From the NCBI GenBank assembly GCA_024626585.2, contig JANKJI020000004.1, positions 80,617,597 through 80,637,421 on the forward strand: a stretch of 19,825 bases of DNA, in the 5' to 3' direction. This stretch comes from Ginkgo biloba (Eukaryota > Plantae > Ginkgophyta). The notes beneath the pieces were generated by a model, which was not told the origin of the DNA, ran no database searches, and saw nothing but the letters and a program-made list of their open reading frames with translations. Positions 1 to 12,455 of this stretch are shown piece after piece (the stretch's first letter is position 1; each line of letters starts with the position of its first letter). Position numbers and translations under genes: made by a program.

Positions 1-279
1 TCATCCATTCTGCTTTGAATTTTCTAGGGATTACTGTAGGTAGAAGCATTACAATGGTAGGATGATTAGTTGGAGGGACGATTAGTTGTAAAGAAGATGA
101 GAATTCATATAAGTTGCAATTTGACATGCTGCCCAGGATTTTAATTTAACGATTTCACTGATAAAATACATCATGAATGTAATTAACAACATTTAAAAAT
201 AAATACAAAGCACAACCGTATCTTATTTGCAAGTAATGTGTGCAAAAATTCTAAGTTATGGGTGATTTATTTGTAGATT

Positions 280-2037
280 CTTATGCCTTCCTAATGCTTA
301 GCATCTCATCCATACTTACTTCCCTAACCCTAACAGAACAACCTCGTCTACTACTCTTTCTAGGAAACTTTTTCAAATGTGTCAAAAATAATGAAGACAA
401 CCGATGAACATTCATCCAAGTGCTTCTTATTGGTGATAATATTGAAGCCCTGGAAGTAGGTGGAACCATGAGGATGTACAAAGAAATGAATTTAGTCCCC
501 ATGTTTCCTTTCAATTTTTATGCCTTCAACTATTAGAAGACACTACATTAATTGGGATTCCACAACACTGTGTGATATATTCCATATCCCCTCCTTTGGT
601 TTTTGGATTTGGATTTGATTGCTTATTATTTCTCTTTTGGGACCTTCCTTGATAATACTTTTCGTAGCACTATCTATTTTAACAATTGCTCCACAGGTGC
701 AATAAATCCCATATCCTTTTCACCTCCCATATCTCTACTAATATATGTGGGTCCCTTATTTCTAATCCTCCTATTAGCTTAGAAGCATAGACAATGGTCC
801 AATTAACTACATAATATATTTTTATATGCTTCTTCCATGGTGCCCACACAAATTTTATTTCAATCTTCTTTAAAATGTTAGGACTATCTTTGGCAACATA
901 AACAAATAATCTATGCATTTTAGTATCAAAGAAAGTATGGATTAGAAAATAATTCTTCTTTTAGCCAAATTCAAGTACTCATTGCCAAGAATCTAATGTG
1001 TTACAATTTTTTTCTATAAAAGGTAGGCACTTTGCAACCTTCATATTTGATAACCAAGTGGGTGCCCAAAAACTTGAGTACTTCATCTCCTTTGATGCTA
1101 ACCAAATTTAAGGTGACAATCAACTACTCTCTGGTTGGTTTTAGAACACCAACTATTAATATTCTAGTTTTGACTGGGTTAAACTTACCTCTTGATGTTG
1201 CTAAAAGGATTATTATAATCTACTTTCATATGCTTAATTAAGCTTTAGATGGGTTTCTAATTAATATAAGATCATCTACAAATATCTGATAGCTACATGT
1301 GATTCCTTAAGTGATTTCAAAACCACTTAGAAGGTCCCTATCTCGCTAATATGAAAACATGTTTGATACAGAGTCCACCAATACAATACATAAATATGGA
1401 GAGAGAGGGTATCCTTGTTTAATCCCTCTGCATCAATAAAAGGAAACTATATTTTCCTCATTTATGAGTATAACATAGTTCACTATAATGAGTATCCCTC
1501 TAATCCACTTCAGATCCGTTCATTCAATTCCTTTATCCAGAGAATAAGGAATAAATTCCCACTTAACTATGCAATATGATTTCTCCATATCAACTTCCAT
1601 CATCATCATGCAATTCTTTTGAGTTATGGTAGTATGTAGTGCCTCGATTATGACATTGATACTATCCATTATTTTTCTACCTTTAATGAAAGCAATTTGA
1701 ATTTAGGAAATCATATTAAACAAAATTGGTGCCATTATTTCTACAACCACCTTTCCTAATATCCTATAGGATATGTTGCATAGGCTTATTGGTCTCTAAT
1801 ATCTAATTATTTTTGGACATTTTTCATAGGCATGACAAATGAGTGTGGAATCAATGGCTAGGAGAAGTATTACCATAGTTTGTAATTTCTTTGCAATTTC
1901 CACCAGTAATAGAGTCATCCTACCTTTGGATAAGATGTTGTAAACTTTAGGGGGAAACCCATGTAATATCAATGATTTCTCCAATTCCATATAGTTGATT
2001 CCATATTCAATTTTAACCTCTCTTTGATTTTTGGTAA
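280..2037 (-). mobile_element. Degenerate L1-clade LINE ORF2, reverse transcriptase and C-terminal half
   Basis: Minus-strand motifs occur in canonical order: EVK..MELEKS..HGFPPKVY (KSPGxDGFPxEFY-like), RPISLCNISYRILGKV (from 1795), QIAFIKGRKI, VDMEKSY..VKWEF, RGIKQGYPLSPYL (1429-1391), FVDD catalytic motif (1282-1271), KFLGTHL and GGLEIRD. Many stops and frameshifts. The left boundary is approximate. Confidence 0.9.
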
Positions 2038-2375
2038 AGCATATGCCTCGGGGGCTCACTTAGTTATAAACTCTCAAAACATGTGCATGATAGAACTAAT
2101 AAATAATCCTCTATATAGGCTCACAACTCAATATTTTCACCCCCTATTTTATAACCTTATGTAATTTCTTAACCCTCTTTTATATAGTATATAATTGTAA
2201 ACAAAATAAAATTACAGAGAAACTCTTGTGGGATGATCTTAAGCTTTAAAACAGTTTAATGCCAAAACTAGTCCTCTTTATCATGGAGATACAGAAGTAG
2301 TTGTTCTGAAGATTCAATTCTAAAGGGGAAGGTGAAAGGGCGGGTGCCCACTTGATCTCTGGGCTTTTAATTCAA

Positions 2376-2393
2376 ATCTCTTCAATTTTCCAG
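2376..2393 (+). promoter_or_regulatory. 3' splice acceptor with polypyrimidine tract
   Basis: atctcttcaattttccag lies immediately before the composition switch and the start of the conserved reading frame. Confidence 0.8.
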
Positions 2394-3308
2394 GGATGAA
2401 AAATTCATGTGGAATACCATCGGTGAGTCAGGGAATGTTGGAGGATGTATCGGACCGTCTCTCAGGATTTGCAACAGCTGGCGATGGTGAATCTGCTATC
2501 GATTATGGTTGTCAGTGCTGGGATTCTGACACATACGAAGATGATGATGATCCTGGGTATCACAGACAGCCAATTGAAAATGAAGCGTGGTTTTTGGCAC
2601 ATGAAATTGAAAATCCCACAGAGGATGAACTGGCGAGCAGCATAAAGTTGGAAAATGATTGTAACCTTAATGAGGACGTCAGATCTGTTATGGAAGAAGA
2701 ATCTTCTCTCTTTGTTGAGAACGAGTTGAGGCATGCTTGGAAGGAAAGAGTAGAGCCTAATTTGGATGCTCTTACTGTGCCTGATGGTAATATTTCGAGT
2801 GGCCACGAAGGAGAGTTCATGAGCTCAAAAGCGCCAGATTCGTTAAAGGTAATGGATTCATGGCATTGTTTGAACAGGGACATCCGGGCGGAAGTTGGCA
2901 ACGGCCAAGGACGATTTGATTGCCCATTAGAAGTTGGCAATAGTTTTCTTGGAGCAACAAGATCTGATGATTTATTGATGAACAATTCAGGAAGCGGTGA
3001 ATACATGGCAGGGGACAGCAGTGAAGGAGACCCAAGAGAGGGAGAGACAGAGACTCTGAATTCTATGCAGGGCACATATTGGCAAAGTTCAAGCTTCCAG
3101 GAGCGTTTGGGGGCATGTGCAATCAGTCAGCTCCAATCAAATGATGTGGCAGGGAGTTCAGTTGAAGATGATTACGAAGAGCATTTTGGGCACCGTTCCT
3201 ACTACAATGAAGCATTGTTTCGTAAAAGTCAAAACTTAAAATTACAATTGTCTGAGCAGGATTTACTGGAACAAGGTTCAGCATTGGTCGAAATGCGTTC
3301 AAGTACGA
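2394..3308 (+). CDS. DYRKP: Internal coding exon (915 bp, phase 1-1) of a plant-specific DYRK-family Ser/Thr kinase gene (DYRKP, similar to Arabidopsis At1g73450/At1g73460/At3g17750); acidic N-terminal region, no kinase domain in this window
   Basis: Stop-free frame, clearly more GC-rich than its flanks and retaining CpG. It translates to SVSQGMLEDVSDRLSGFATAGDGESAIDYGCQCWDSDTYEDDDDPGYHRQPIENEAWFLAHEI, matching the DYRKP block SVSQG..ED.SDL.SGFATxGDG...WDSDEYxDDDDxGYxRQPIEDExWFLAHEI (recalled from memory). Acceptor is tctcttcaattttccAG| ending at 2393. Best donor is |GTAAGT at 3309-3314. The ORF track 2396-3379 runs past the donor to TAA. Confidence 0.85.
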
Positions 3309-3314
3309 GTAAGT
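3309..3314 (+). promoter_or_regulatory. 5' splice donor GTAAGT (alternative same-phase GT at 3303)
   Basis: Perfect GTAAGT consensus, with T-rich intron-like sequence soon after. Confidence 0.65.
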
Positions 3315-3624
3315 CGAGCAGACATATTTTTCTTAGGGCCGCTTCGCCCTTTCCTATATTTACGAATAAATTACATTAAGGATCTCTTTTNNNNNNNNNN
3401 NNNNNNNNNNNNNNNNNNNNNNNNNNNNNNNNNNNNNNNNNNNNNNNNNNNNNNNNNNNNNNNNNNNNNNNNNNNNNNNNNNNNNNNNNNACTTTTAAAA
3501 AATTACAACTTAACCCCATTGTATATAAGTATATACAATTTAAAAAATTATTAATAAAAACACCGCTTGTATCACTCACATGGTTATGCATAGGAAACTC
3601 TAGTGACCCCCCTTGAGCATATTT

Positions 3625-4975
3625 TAGTTCTTATAAATATGTATCATCTAATCTAATTAATATTTCAAACATGATGTTTTGGGTCCACATTCTACTAGTA
3701 GAAATGCCAACAACCTTCCACATTTATGCAAAGATTTTAATAGCTTATTTTTTTAACTCAACCTCATTGACAAGAAGTTTTCCTTTTTCATCAATTAAGT
3801 AGTGAATGCTATTTTGTGCTTTCCATTCTTTTGACGTTATGTTAAAATTTGAAGTATTTTTATCTCTTTCCAATGTCCATTTGGTTTTTTCCTAGACCTT
3901 TTAGTTTGCATCTTTGAGAGTATTAAGTTGATTCAACTCTATTGTGATTTCCCCTAATTTTATGGATCGTTCCATTGAAGTGCCATATTCCTAAATTTGC
4001 TTTCACATGTTTTTTAGCATTACTTCCAAGTCATATTTTTGCAACATTTGTCTCCTATGGGTTTCCTTGGCATGAACCTTGATTTTCTCTTTTAGTTCCT
4101 TCAAAATTGCTAATCATTTTTCACTTGGAGGTAACTCTATAGACAAGGCTTGAACTAATTCATCTCACCATCCCTTGAGATTCTCTATATATTTCTAAAT
4201 TTTTGGTATTGATGTGTTGAACTTGAAGGGTTTATTAACTTTACCCCCACCTGTCTCCTTGGTTTTTAATTGAAAGAGTAATGGGACATGGTTGGAATAA
4301 TTTGATGGGTCAACAAATTTGTACATATAGCCAATGAATTTATCTCTAAGTTCTATTGGGATGTATACCCTATCTAGTCTCTCTTGCACTTGNNNNNNNN
4401 NNNNNNNNNNNNNNNNNNNNNNNNNNNNNNNNNNNNNNNNNATTCCCTTAAGATCTTGGTACTCTTTAATTTCAACAATTTTTGATCTTTGAGATATCCT
4501 ACCCTTTTTAGTAGTAGAATTTTCATTAAAATTGAAATCATGCACCACTATTGTGTGATGATTGTGAGAATTAAAGACAAATGCTTATAAAGAAACCTTT
4601 GTTTAGAAACCTAATCTTTCCTAGGATGATATAGGATAACATATTCCAATTATGATCCATTTAAAGGTACCTTTCTAGGATTATGTCATTATTCAATGCC
4701 CTTTCGAATTCATCTTGGTTTTTATTATTGTTCCCACTTTGTCTTCATTCCACATTATCAAGATTCCACTTCTTGTTGATTGACAACGTCCAACCATGTG
4801 TAAGGATTTAGGCCAAATTTGTTGAACAATCTTATATACTTCATTATTTATCAAATGAGAGTTAGTGTGCAATACCATAATTAGATACCATTTCTTGATT
4901 GATCATTTTATTTCATTTTTCTTTCTCTAATTATTTCCATTCATTCATCTTGTATTCCAAGTTAATATATTGCTT
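3625..4975 (-). mobile_element. Degenerate L1-clade LINE ORF2, APE endonuclease and linker half
   Basis: Minus-strand NILTWNTR (4971-4948, ILSWNVRG-like), RSGILIMWN, ERLDRVY, SNHVPL..KPFKFN (SDHxP..PFRF-like), KWTLERDKNTSNF (3882-3844, WLxEGDRNTxFF-like) and DEKGKLL. Interrupted by stops, frameshifts and one N-run. Confidence 0.85.
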
Positions 4976-7900
4976 TCCCAATGATCCCGAGTCATTAATT
5001 CTACAAAAATTAAAAGGGTTTTAAAGTGTACCTCTCATTACTATCTTTTGCCTGACATATTTTGAGGACTTCAATCCTTGTTAACTTATTATTTCTAGGT
5101 TTCCTGGCTTGGATCGTTCAATTTGGATAACATGCACGTCTCTAGTAATTATTCTCTCCAGAATTCTATTGATTTTCTATTACTCATTATTTTACCAAGT
5201 AATCGATCTAAGAAGTTGACATTACTAGTTTATGTGGGAACTTCACTATGAATCTCCATCCATATCTTTATTACTTTTTGATTAATTATAGTAAGAGTAG
5301 TAAATTCCAAACCTCTTTGGTGTTTTTAAATAGGCCTTACTTTTTTTTTTCTTCTATTTCCTTTCATTTGGTAATCTTTCCTCCTATTATAATTTTTTGA
5401 TTCCATACCTTTGTAATCCCCCTTGTGATGCATTACTTGATGGGGGTTTATATTACTTTATTAGTGGGAAACCTAATCTCAACTAGCATTGCAATGGGGT
5501 CTAGGTTCATGAGAGACTCTTTTGGTCCCTGTGTTCANNNNNNNNNNNNNNNNNNNNNNNNNNNNNNNNNNNNNNNNNTCATAGTGGATGCTACCTTATC
5601 ATGGTTGAAAAAAATGATAAGATTTAAGTCTGATAGTTATCTAAGTGCGTTTCAAACCCTTTCAAATTAATAAAATATTAACACAAACCTTTCGATAATA
5701 TTCATAAATGTAGCCATAACATGCATGTATTCTTATGGGATATTCTATAAATAATGACTAAGATAGCTTACCCAACTTAGATTACTAGAGAAATACNNNN
5801 NNNNNNNNNNNNNNNNNNNNNNNNNNNNNATATTAACATAGATGGCTGACTGATGTGTGGTCGATGTTGTAATATTGATTAATGAGAATACGAAAATGTA
5901 TAGAGGCTTTTCCTAAAATAAATTCTTATTGGTTATTGATTTTTTTCTTCTAGTTTTTGATTAATTGAAGCATCAATATTAGGTTATAGTTACTAAATAT
6001 TGTATTTGTATTTAATATCTCCTCGAATTTGCTTGCACAGAAGGCAATGAGAGATCTCTAGGCAACTAGTATGTACCTAGTGNNNNNNNNNNNNNNNNNN
6101 NNNNNNNNNNNNNNNNNNNNNNNNNNNNNNNNNNNNNNNNNNNNNNNNNNNNNNNNNNNNNNNNNNNNNNNNNNNNNNNNNNGGTTCTAACTTCAAGTAA
6201 TCCAAAGCACCTTCTTCTATGAAAAAATTCATTCAAGAATGATTCTAAAGTGGATATTATAATATTCAATGGAAACATGAATTCATAAAAGTTAGACGCA
6301 AGGATCTAAACACTCAAGATATATTAGTCTTCCCAATTTTATTTAGATTTATAAAATATCACCTTTGTTTCATTAAAAATTTCTAAGTCTTTGGGACTAA
6401 AAATTCTTAGTTTTAGTTTTCTATAATAAGTTACTTTGAAAAATATAACCTTATATGGATTTTAATATCTCTTGATATCCCTATAAATAAGTTGATTTAT
6501 TATTTTAGTCTTTCCAAAATTTGTGTGATCGTTCAATCTCTTTAGGTCCCAATGCACCTCAATAAGCTTCTTGGTCATTTACCCATAATACATTTTTGAG
6601 GTCTTTTAAAGAGGAATATCTAATGGTTATCATGTCTTTGATCATTTGATATTTTATTACTTATCTCATTATAGTCTTAGTGTTTCTTTGTTATCTTAAT
6701 AAGGGTATTAAGTCAACTATATATAATGAGTTCATCTTTTTCATGTCATTCTTATCATTCTATTCTTTGTTATGATATCTCTTGATTCTTTCTTATCTTC
6801 ATAGTTCATACATCTCATATTTACTGATATGTTCTTCAAGGCAGTCTTCCAACTCTTATGGATTGATAATTCTTCATGAGATTCTTCTCTAATTAATTTC
6901 TTATCACTTCCTTTAAATATGTACTTTGTATTTTCTTCCACCTTTATTTCTTGCTTTGGTAGTTTTACCTTGAACTCCTTGGTAAAATCAGTAAATGAAT
7001 AGGTGGCCTTTTGTTGAGGTGTGAATGGATGATATATCTCATGTGCTACAAATAAATAAGTTTTGTTATTGATCTAAATCACTTAATATTTCACATTGAA
7101 AGTTGTTTATCCAAATATACAAGGAAGTTTTTTTTCTCTCTATAAAGATACCATTCAAAACTTCTTTTTTTGTATAAATAGTCTAGCCATTTTGTGGTAC
7201 TCATGCGAAAATTGTTCCATTTGCTCAAATTATATTTTTCTTTGTATTTGATCAAAGACATGCTTTTAATCATTGGTATTTTTTTCTTGAGGCCTAATAT
7301 ATCGAAGTTATTGGTTGAATCCTTAGTGGAAGGGTCTAAGTGGGATAATTCCCATGTCATCCATAATAATAATATTTTTGCAAATGATCAATCAACTCTT
7401 AAAAAGGGTTTTGGAAATGTTCACAATTGAATTTTAAATTGATACTTGTGTAAAATCCTAATGGCCAAGATTAATTAAAAATTAAAAGCTTTTATAGACT
7501 AAATAAGTCTTAAGAACCACCGAGGTCACATGAACTTAAGAAACACCCTTTAAATTTAAGATGATTAATTACACAAGTTCCTTTAATCACACTTTTAAAT
7601 TAAAGTATATATAATTGTATACTTATTTTAATTATATTTTATGTGGAACTTTATTACTTTTTATGTGGAGAATACCATTGAGGTGACATTGTGGAGTCGA
7701 GAATAGGTGAGACGACTAGTAGGTTGAGAAGAGGATGATAATGGAAAATAGCCATAAGATAATATGTAGAAGATGTGAACAAATGGGAAATTGAATGTTT
7801 GGGATTGCAGATGATAACATAAAATAAGAGATCGATGATTTAATTATATAATTAAAATATGGAGGAGATGATGTTGAGATGGGACTGAGGAAAAATAGAA

Positions 7901-10900
7901 GATGGAATGGATTAAATGGTTAATGAGATGCTGTTCTAGACCATTTGATGATAGAAGACATAGGTATAAATTATAGGTGACAAATGTAGGGACATAAATT
8001 TATGGNNNNNNNNNNNNNNNNNNNNNNNNNNNNNNNNNNNNNNNNNNNNNNNNNNNNNNNNNNNNNNNNNNNNNNNNNNNNNNNNNNNNNNNNNNNNNNN
8101 NNNNNTATTACATAAATCTCTATATAGAGAACATATTTAGGCCATACAAGTGGACATAAAACCTTAATTCCAGTGTAGTAGGGAATACATAAGGTTATAA
8201 ACTAGATTATCCCCTTGGATTTATGATCATATGCTTCTGTATATTTAAAGGTCATCCCTTCAAGCCTCCATTACTAGGTGGGTGCATAAATAGTTATCTA
8301 GTTCTAAGCATAAACCTTCTTGGCATTGACATGGATGGTGCTTAAATTTTCTAGGACACATTTATTGAAAATATTAGGACATATTTCTTAATGATTATAA
8401 TATACAATATTCTCTCATTGTATATTATTCTATTAATTAGAACAACCCATTAAATTATAACTAATTCACCTCTAGTTGGAGGGTTTATTAGATATTTAAT
8501 TAAAAAGAGAATATCTATAAATGAATGTGTATAAATTGATTACTTATCACATTATTTTTTTTATAGTATTTGTATGCATATGTTTTGGTATGTCTCCAAA
8601 GAAAGAAAGCATCATTGTGACTATTCCATGTTGTTTTCTCACCTTGAGACTTGTAATATTCANNNNNNNNNNTTATATAGTGTTTATATGTACAATGGTT
8701 GGTGATTAATGGATGTATGTGGATGAATGGAGTGCACAATCTATGTGATGCATAATAGGGTTGTAGGTAAGAGTTGGGCTTGATTTACCTATAGTGCTCA
8801 AGGCTTGATTCAAGTAGAAGTACCACTTCAATAAATAAGGATAGTACTCATGGAACCAAGTACCATGGGAAGTATTTTTGGAATTAATAATATTCTTTAC
8901 AAGGATAGGGAAGGGACTCTATTTATTGAAGGATCTTAAAAGATCATGTGGATCAATTACATGTTCTGTTTCAAACTATAATGGATGAACAAACAAGGAC
9001 TAGTGAGATCATGTCCAACATTGTATTTTAGTGCATAATTTGGCATAAAATCCCATAACAAAAGTTCAAACCAATAATGCAATTTATTAAATTAATTATC
9101 CTAGTTGTAGGTGTCATTATGTAGATTCCCTAAGGGTAAGGATGAGGCCCTCCTCTAAATCAATCGTCTTGTTAACCTCTAAGGAATCCAAAACAACTAT
9201 TAATGGCATAGTGTCCTTTTAATGCAAAGTCTAAAGTTGATAATTAAGTCTTCTAAGGTAGAGTCCAATTGGATTCATGGATATAGGTTCTTATAGTATA
9301 CTATTCTTGTTAGAATTATACTGATTTTCTCAAAAAAAAACCTTGTACTATTATAAAGAACGAGATCAAAATAGATTGATTGTTAGTTTTATAGGTAGAT
9401 TTCAAGAGGGGATCAATGTATAATTTCTATCTTCTTAGTTATAAAGATTCACTTATCTTAAAGTCGTAACATTTCAAGTAGACAATCTAGATTAGCATGA
9501 TAAGTTCAAGACTTATTTATCCAAGTAGATGTGTACAATGAAAGAGAATAATTGACTTGAAATTTATAGATAGTCTCCACTTGCACTTATAATAGGATTT
9601 ATTATTATTTCCTCTTCATAGTATATAAGCTATCTTCCATTATACTTCTAGGGTCAAAGGAGGAGAAAGGAACCTAATACTTATATGAGAAATCCTCAAA
9701 TAAACTACTTTAGAACCTCTTAGAGTTCTTCCAAATTGAAGAAAAACTAAGAAATTACAAGTAGAAAAAATAATTCATCTTATAATAAAATCAAGACTTG
9801 GAACAACTAAAATAAGGTTGGATATGATGAGTATAATTGCTTTTTCTTTTCACATCTAAAAGAACTATGAATGTTTCTAAGTCTTTGTGCAAGGATAGAG
9901 GAGTTATATACAACTATTTAATTTGATGAATTACATCTCGCTTTAGCTGTAGTGAACATAAAACAAACTTTAACAATAATTGATAAGTAATTCACTTTGA
10001 AGATGAAAATTAAGAACAAGATCTAAAAATTTTAGACAATGAAATCCATAAGAGATATAATGACAATAATGGTGCATGAGATCAATTTGCATACTTCCAT
10101 ACATTCAAATCCCTACTTCATAAGTGAGAAAATAAAATAAGATAATGGAAAGGTAAGTCCAAGTCCATTAATACAAACTATGCCATAGATGAAATTATTT
10201 GTGATGTTGTTACTATGGACAATACTATTGGGGAGTCCTAAGCTGCTTTAATTTTTTTTGTATAAAGACAAATGTTGATTGAATAAATATAGATCTTTTT
10301 CTATCATTATATCGCTTCCTACAACAATTTTTTAAATTTAGTTTGAAATGCACTAGTTGAATACTTACTGTAAGCCTTACAAAAAATTATGTTCATTATG
10401 TTGAGAGGACTAGGAACATCTAAAAAAGAGGCCAAATTTAATTTATGACATCTACACATATTCAGGGTATACAAAATCAATATTATGCTACATTGAATAA
10501 TTATGATAATTTGTTTAAAGAGACATTCACATAGACATGGTATACAAAAGAGGACTTACTCTCAATACATTCATTTCACATCTCATTAATCTACTATCAA
10601 GGGAACCTGTACTGAATGGTATACTTTATATGAAGTATTCTACAGAGAATGAGGAGTTCCATAGATAAGCCAATATATATTGAAAAAGGGACATATTTAA
10701 ACTAGTTCTTCACCACATAGATAATGGATAATTCTAGTGTTAAAGAAGGATGACACATGGTGTACGTGTATGAATTTTAGTGCCATTACCAAGATAACAA
10801 GAAACATATAACTAGGATTGATAATTTTGGACTAATTACAAGGAACCTAATACTTTATAAAAGTGGCATTAAATATCAAATATGAGGAACGAGAAACATA

Positions 10901-12455
10901 AAACTACCTTTAAATAAGACAAAGGCTATATGAGTGGCTAATCATGCCACTTGGAATGATTAATACATTGAATATGTTAATGAATTTGATGAAATATGTT
11001 CTTCATGATTTCATGGACAATTTTATGATTTTATACTTAGATGCTATTCATTTTTTTTTTTTTTTTAGAGANNNNNNNNNNNNNNNNNNNNNNNNNNNNN
11101 NNNNNNNNNNNNNNNNNNNNNNNNNNNNNNNNNNNNNNNNNNNNNNNNNNNNNNNNNNNNNNNNNNNNNNNTGGAGGAGAAATGAAATCCACAAAACCCT
11201 TTATGGAAGTCTAAAAAATGCAGCACCATTGGTGAATCCCTCGAATGGAATGTTGACCCTATGTAGATAAAGGAGAATAACCCTAAATCGTGGAACTTAT
11301 TATATAGAATCCATTGGAAACCCTTGAATAGGAAGAAAAATTTGACAAGAAACATTCACCAGCTACTATGCATGTCACCAAAGAGACAAAACATATTTTC
11401 CACCAATAATAGAGAAGAAAGAGTATTATTAGAGGAGTATGCTAAAACCCTCACCATTAATAGAGAAGTCACACTACTTCACCTTTTAGAGAAAAGAATA
11501 AACCAAAACATCCGCTAAAAAATATGAAAGCATTGGAGCATTGTAAATGAGACACATTAATAAAGAAGAATGCAAGATTCAAGAATAATGTAGGAATCTA
11601 GAGGAATAAAGAATCAAAAAATTAATTTTAGGCCAAAATGGGCAACTATTTTTGTCAACCATAGAAATTCCTATTTTAGTTTTTGTATGGAGTAGGATGG
11701 GTTGAAAATATGTGCTACTAAAGGTAAGTTTTGAGAGATTGGACTATGCTACCTATTATAAACAAACTTCACATTTTCCTTGGTCTAGCTTACTTCTACT
11801 AGACAATAATTCTTAAGTTTTTTAAGAATAGATTTTCCATATAATAAACCTCTAATGCATTCATTGCTTGACTTGTTTGATTCTATATGCATTGGATATT
11901 TATAATGAAAGGACATAAATGTATGTGACTTGGAAATTGCATCTATTTAAAAAAATGTAATTGGACCTTTATGTGAGATGGAGGGTAATTATTATTATTT
12001 TCATCTCAAGAAAGGGCTTAATTACAAATTGATCCTGCTACCTTTTTATTCTCATAAATAAATTTAATTTCAATAAAAAAAAGAAAAGAAAAGTCTATTC
12101 TATGTTCCATGCAATAATTCTTTCCTATAAGTGATCTGGGACATATCTGTTTAACAATTCTAAGTAGTTTATGGATAACAAAACTTTTTATCCAACACTT
12201 GTATTTTTCTATTCTCTTAGGCTGTAATTAAATGTGGAGAAGAATGATAAAACATGTGCCTCTTATTGTGTATCCAAGGTTTCTCATAAAAAAATTAAAA
12301 ATTAATTATTGATTCTAATTATACCACGCTAGTCTATTTTTATCATTTTTATTCAGGTGTAGGAATGAGTACATCTATTGATTTTGATAGATTCAATAAT
12401 ATTGTGATCCTCATGGATTTTAGGAAGACCATATATAATCCTCAAGTAAGTAAAT

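Follow-up and report, generated by a model that had tools for sequence, protein, structure and literature searches.

The window, a stretch of 19,825 nucleotides of Ginkgo biloba DNA, is AT-rich (GC approximately 0.22-0.43) and contains 16 N gaps, of which seven measure exactly 100 N. Its first part is occupied by a LINE on the minus strand, broken by an insert that includes an exon of a DYRKP-type kinase gene. The RT and C-terminal half of a decayed L1-type ORF2 lies at 280-2037, and the linker and endonuclease half of the same ORF2 at 3625-4975. In stop-to-stop translations, the endonuclease-type motifs HDFNFN, ERLDR, SNHVPLLFQL and KPFKFN were read at 4584-4198 of the minus strand and the linker motif KWTLERDKNT near 3880 of the same strand. 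Beyond the break, the RT side continued with HGFPP (approximately 1955), RPISLCN, QIAFIKGR and RGIKQGYPLSPYL, with RT pieces at 1795-1349 (minus strand). Three RT pieces matched Pfam RVT_1 at profile positions 10-34, 41-87 and 117-141, in colinear order and each weakly. No Pfam family was detected with the endonuclease pieces, and an Atlas look-up of 4198-4392 led to endonuclease/RT clusters, which lends weak support. Colinearity was judged from motif spacing rather than from an alignment to a family consensus, because PDB sequence searches with two LINE pieces, intended for placement on human L1 ORF2p, returned nothing usable.

The order of an apurinic-type endonuclease followed by a reverse transcriptase in one ORF2 is that of L1-type elements, and on its translations the element is read as a real, decayed LINE split at 2037/3625. 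The frame runs through ELKYA up to 3616 and resumes with YALPKIKE from 2046, so that the joined reading is ELKYA/LPKIKE; AGCATAT, found on either side of the break, encodes the Y-A that the two readings share. Once the insert (2047 to 3615/3624) is removed, the W of the W..D.NT linker motif lies approximately 112 residues from HGFPP, a spacing that we take to be that of L1-type elements. The motif order, the colinear RVT_1 matches and the ELKYA/LPKIKE reading bear out the preliminary description, in which the two halves were said to be colinear and abutting.

Positions 1-6000 of the window were compared, at a likeness of at least 80%, with two DNA contig sets (X5 and X8), with RNA contigs filed under a second organism label (X18, organism B) and with raw polyA RNA reads (X24). 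Within the LINE, the endonuclease frame continues across the 49-N gap at 4393-4441; the X8 contig that fits 3531-4392 goes on for 342 nt unlike 4442 onward, so that either the contig has hopped to a different LINE copy or sequence is missing here. In one X8 contig, 5537 is followed immediately by 5579, and 5796 by 5830, so that the N gaps 5538-5578 and 5797-5829 hold no sequence in that sample. Further along the plus strand, a decayed retroelement RT-like reading (…FMDNFMILYLDAI…) at approximately 10560-11060 runs into a gap at 11072 and looks, on its translation, like a Ty3/gypsy-type fragment.

The insert is flanked by AGCATAT at 2038-2044 and 3616-3622. The left copy of this presumed target-site duplication (TSD; 2038-2046) reads AGCATAT followed by GC and encodes the Y-A of the LINE frame, and the right copy (3616-3624) reads AGCATAT followed by TT. 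The seven sure bases and the GC/TT difference are compatible with a 9-bp duplication carrying two changes, and thus with the seven of nine matches originally noted; the alternative is an 8-bp duplication in which one base has changed and the G run has slipped by 1 nt. As GCATATGC is palindromic, the TSD and the outermost inverted repeat are not fully separable.

Inside the duplication, GGGGGCTCACT at 2050-2060 faces GGGGGGTCACT at 3602-3612 on the minus strand in a 10/11 block, and these two sites are the only matches to the pattern in the window. A second block on this diagonal matches 2077-2095 to 3567-3585 at 15 of 19 positions. The composition-aware local score of the two 70-nt ends was equalled by 4 of 4965 random window pairs (approximately 1 in 1000). 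The terminal match was revealed by this score only; plain, stringent local alignment of the ends gave nothing in register and returned just an off-diagonal AT-rich 40-mer. The in-register similarity is weak and spans only about 50 nt, with none on the same diagonal beyond approximately 2096. The inverted ends described earlier were therefore recovered in register, whereas the weaker similarity said to extend to about 110 bp was not. Members of the hAT superfamily have 8-bp TSDs and YARNG termini. Here, the termini are CTCGG on the left and CAAGG on the right, and the duplication reaches 7/8 only if the 1-nt slip is allowed.

Two parts of one MITE-like family make up the outer portions of the insert, both on the plus strand. 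The left unit (2047-2236) comprises a TIR, a core at 2160-2213 and a decayed right-end remnant at 2216-2232, and the right part (3491-3615) comprises a core and the right TIR, recognized by contig depth, loose ends and its inverted match to the left end. Against single-copy levels of approximately 18 in X5 and 77 in X8, the summed contig depth reached 78105 (X5) and 20665 (X8) in the bin 2001-2200, and 1408 (X5) and 5168 (X8) in the bin 3401-3600. Between 30 and 57 contigs fitted from 2050-2056 onward and were unlike the flanks before, while others lay on 2051-2213 in both orientations; on the right side, the family had loose ends at 3509 and 3560. Many genomic copies thus share termini and end at the same base. 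Because copies stop at approximately 2050, the two ends (approximately 2050-2213 and 3509-3615) are termini of a real transposon family with hundreds to thousands of copies. Direct similarity was found between 2168-2229 and 3509-3570 and between 2219-2230 and 3594-3605, so that the left unit looks like a whole member whose right tip has decayed. Taken together, the data support the interruption of the LINE by a DNA-transposon-type unit with TIR ends and a flanking target duplication. A further copy of the family lies on the opposite strand at 8106-8217, with a terminus CCAAGGGG ending near 8217; its remainder is hidden in the 100-N gap at 8006-8105.

Between these ends lies a working internal exon of a DYRKP-type kinase gene (2394-3312, plus strand, 919 nt), identified by homology, polyA RNA and single contig depth in DNA. 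It is preceded by the 3' end of the upstream intron (2237-2393), with the acceptor CAG at 2391-2393, and followed by the start of the downstream intron (3313-3390), in which a rise of depth in the bin 3201-3400 and the stop of an X8 contig mark the beginning of a further repeat before the gap. The exon is open over 304 codons from 2396, and the earlier statement that it has no stop or frameshift holds. PolyA RNA covered 2401-3400 and almost nothing else in 1-6000, with loose ends in 8 reads before 2391 and in 11 reads behind 3312. A 3635-nt RNA contig of organism B fitted 2391-3312 with one difference in 922 nt and carried identical loose ends. When just the 30-letter loose ends were added to the exon by script, the frame stayed open, and the spliced-on part read ...STSNQRCKSEAS, homologous to STTNQKFKGDES of the Cryptomeria protein. 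Over 2192-2393, contigs of DNA and of pre-mRNA from other samples match with zero differences. The candidate donors are GTAAGT at 3309 and, 4 nt further on, GTCGAG at 3313; the RNA fit through 3312 favours the weaker-looking GT at 3313, unless the next exon begins with GTAA. Of the junctions first suggested at 2394 and 3308, the former agrees with the observed splicing at 2391/2394 and the latter gives way, under the same proviso, to 3312. Elsewhere in the window, five polyA RNA reads fitted just 46 nt at 27-72 with consistent loose ends on both sides; since canonical splice sites are absent from its flanks, these reads probably derive from a related repeat elsewhere.

At a likeness of at least 80%, the depth over 2801-3200 was exactly one contig in both DNA sets (18 in X5 and 76.8 in X8), and no donor copy of the exon was seen in either. 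Further contigs were drawn by its conserved first third (2401-2800) alone and presumably represent paralogues. Because the exon is single-copy and its polyA RNA is spliced at both borders into the DYRKP frame, it is the gene's own, only and actively spliced copy, not a stray captured one. The preliminary description had envisaged a Pack-MULE-like capture of a duplicated fragment and had found it puzzling that a transposed copy should be under selection. With a single spliced copy and no donor locus seen, the capture of a duplicate is not upheld, and the puzzle falls away as well: the exon is intact because, as a working part of its gene, it is presumably under ordinary purifying selection.

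The coding content of the exon was compared with 1.84 billion representatives by phmmer, which gave 58 matches with a best identity of 43%. In the matches that were tested, a Pkinase domain lies at the C-terminus, and the part aligned with the exon precedes it. Its best relatives by phmmer and tblastn are Cryptomeria japonica SUGI_0940390 (845 aa) and Taxus KI387_025373, to which it is approximately 40-43% identical in a poorly conserved region. Its full length aligns with residues 97-421 of SUGI_0940390, in which the kinase domain occupies 534-836, and it contains the conserved DYRKP N-terminal block (e.g., the YHRQPIE..AWFL motif). By these alignments, the exon codes for a region upstream of the kinase domain and not for the domain itself; the label "kinase exon" is therefore right as to the DYRKP-type gene and wrong as to the domain. 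The 3635-nt RNA contig has room for a kinase domain, which itself lies outside the window. No Pfam family was found on the exon, public assemblies had no exact match to the 327-aa ORF on record, and word searches with the exon and with the Cryptomeria region returned no protein from this species. No other DYRKP exon was found in the window, including the 16.5 kb downstream. The Cryptomeria gene SUGI_0940390 spans 53 kb, so giant introns are normal for it, and Ginkgo introns have a mean length of 7.9 kb, with 12% longer than 20 kb (PMC5118899); a lone DYRKP exon in the window is accordingly unremarkable.

Two joins determine whether the layout described above is contiguous. The gap at 3391-3490 was not bridged by any listed contig, and the assembly risk pointed out there earlier is real. 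An X8 contig stops 36 nt into the gap, the next one starts at 3531, and a 10.8-kb X5 contig continues past 3390 for 2064 nt that do not fit 3491-6000. The true size of the gap probably differs from 100, and the insert length of 1.6 kb is therefore not fixed. The other join lies in the left repeat unit, within a part of the window that has no N from 1 to 3390. Two X8 contigs, 591-2091 and 2063-3389, fit the window without difference and overlap by only 29 nt of repeat. The contig graph branches at a repeated 31-base word (2062-2092), which forms the link between the LINE with the left end and the exon; no independent contig bridges this word.

Position 2192 gives further cause for caution. The 10.8-kb X5 contig fits 2192-3390 only, with 7553 nt before and 2064 nt after that are unlike anything in 1-6000, and it leaves the window exactly where the organism-B contig does, at 2192 inside the left unit. 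An X8 contig reads through 2191/2192 without difference. The departure could be a contig hop in the repeat, a polymorphic or large insertion, or the exon's true native context. Three X8 contigs, namely that of the LINE RT and left end, that of 2063-3389 and that of the right end and LINE EN, show no difference from the window and have equal depth (77-81), which argues that no second copy exists in this sample. A heterozygous deletion between two MITEs was considered and rejected, given this equal depth and a 2063-3389 contig that is unbroken at 2192. X8 seems to cover only part of the genome, as its contigs total 1.6 Gb and include far fewer copies of the family than those of X5, and its clean graph consequently sets no bound on the problem faced by a whole-genome assembler. 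A Ginkgo draft, which may not be the present assembly, was assembled at K=89 (PMC5118899). In total, we consider that the layout is probably real.

We propose that a composite or cargo-bearing MITE-like unit moved the working exon by cut-and-paste into an intronic LINE, and give this reading a probability of about one half. As assembled, the left unit and the right end enclose the exon together with intron sequence, approximately 160 nt upstream and at least 80 nt downstream. The exon would have been carried as cargo by one element, or two nearby family members in the same orientation would have lain in the introns on either side of it. Transposase would have acted on the outer left and right ends together, so that the composite unit, working exon included, was excised and reinserted a short distance away. 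The target, an older L1-type LINE on the minus strand, may have lain in an adjacent intron of this gene, and a duplication of 7-9 bp would have been made there. If orientation and exon order were kept, splicing would have continued and the gene would thereby have kept working. The fully specified version, in which a two-MITE composite relocated the exon and its splice sites into a LINE in the neighbouring intron with function kept, is more tentative and falls a little short of even odds. The proposal is consistent with LINE halves that are colinear and abutting and with a terminal inverted similarity in register with the flanking seven bases. As the exon is the gene's own, the paradox of old ends around an intact exon is removed. 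Evidence against relocation comes from the two unbridged joins, the departures at 2192, the X5 contig that passes 3390 by 2 kb and does not reach 3491, the lack of another DYRKP exon in the 16.5 kb downstream, the left end of the right neighbour being hidden in the gap, and the decayed right terminus of the left unit. Moreover, we are aware of no reported case in which a transposon has moved a working exon inside its own gene, and the prior for such an event is therefore low.

The strongest competing explanation is an assembly artefact, a serious possibility that we nonetheless hold to be less probable than a real layout. The LINE would carry an ordinary small MITE with its TSD, and two loci would have been joined inside the repeat: the exon would lie elsewhere, or far off in the same gene, with another family member approximately 160 nt upstream of it. 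A short-read assembler or gap filler would have made this join, and a scaffolder would have set the LINE endonuclease contig behind the N gap. Such an origin would account for the X8 overlap of just 29 nt of repeat, for the unbridged gap of a placeholder-like size (the seven 100-N gaps of the window), for the X5 and X18 departures at 2192 with the X5 contig failing to match 3491 onward, and for the lack of any other exon of the gene in the window; the low prior of a relocated working exon points the same way. Nevertheless, the window is N-free from 1 to 3390, and the word shared by the X8 contigs, only 31 nt long, is well below the K=89 of the Ginkgo draft (PMC5118899), if that is the same genome. 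For at least one sample, the contiguity of the repeat body with the exon is proved by the X8 contig 2063-3389. Little weight attaches to contigs that leave the window at a repeat, since contigs likewise depart at 4392, where the LINE frame clearly continues.

Two further explanations were weighed. By Pack-type copy-capture, a non-autonomous element already in the LINE would have gained a copy of the exon through aberrant gap repair, and the donor would be an identical exon elsewhere, as in the X5 contig, or would later have been lost. The succession of left end and core, host DNA, core and right end, with the core partly duplicated, is what is expected from filler-DNA acquisition, as in the origin of Ds and Pack-MULEs, and the 2192-3390 segment shared by the X5 and X18 contigs with different flanks is how a donor would appear. 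The exon depth of one contig in both X5 and X8, neither of which breaks at 2192 as two forms would, the lack of a related copy of at least 80% on 2801-3200, and the fact that a captured copy need not be spliced into mRNA make this origin unlikely. Chance would require a native exon to lie between fragments of one LINE family that are unrelated to each other, one of them 5'-truncated, with two independent MITE insertions next to them. LINE and MITE fragments are indeed dense in the window, but the break points coincide within a few residues, carry the same seven bases and fall exactly at opposite termini of one transposon family in matching orientation, so that we consider such a coincidence highly improbable. 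Relocation by the MITE-like unit thus remains the preferred reading.

If the layout is real, the sole functional copy of the exon rides within a transposon-bounded unit, whereas the cargo of Pack-type elements is generally described as gene fragments that are dead or regulatory. If relocation is true, DNA transposons would be able to carry live exons, splice sites included, to new positions, the step that exon-shuffling models require; within the giant introns of gymnosperms, the places of live exons would be reshuffled by transposons, the locus would represent a direct exon-shuffling intermediate, and long gymnosperm introns would seem to tolerate such moves. If the locus is a mis-join, it serves as a warning that a high-copy MITE beside an exon can yield convincing false "capture" structures in this draft.

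Several known systems resemble the locus in part. The exon is like the plant DYRKP kinases of Cryptomeria and Taxus in that its full length aligns with residues 97-421 of the Cryptomeria protein, and differs in its low identity in this region and in that the rest of the gene lies outside the window. An ordinary MITE insertion into an intronic LINE would likewise split it at a duplicated target by high-copy MITE ends, and would be the whole case if the assembly is mis-joined; as assembled, however, at least 1.3 kb of unique gene sequence lies between the ends. Pack-MULEs commonly have Mutator-type TIRs of 100 bp or more and TSDs of 9-11 bp. These and other Pack-type elements of rice and Arabidopsis (Pack-CACTA) are similarly non-autonomous TIR elements with a TSD, enclosing host gene sequence with intron flanks. 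In contrast, they hold duplicated fragments whose parent gene persists elsewhere, whereas here a single copy, at one contig depth over 2801-3200, is the gene's working exon; long MULE-type TIRs were not seen, and a 9-bp TSD is matched in seven positions. In macrotransposition or alternative transposition of closely linked Ac/Ds (hAT) elements in maize, the former a term used in PMC9910405 and PMC4270019, among others, two neighbouring elements contribute their outer ends, so that the intervening DNA moves as a unit and acquires a single target duplication, as proposed here. Ac/Ds macrotransposition has been observed experimentally for segments of kilobases to megabases, whereas the present event is inferred from one draft gymnosperm locus, and the piece moved would be a functional internal exon that stays in its gene.
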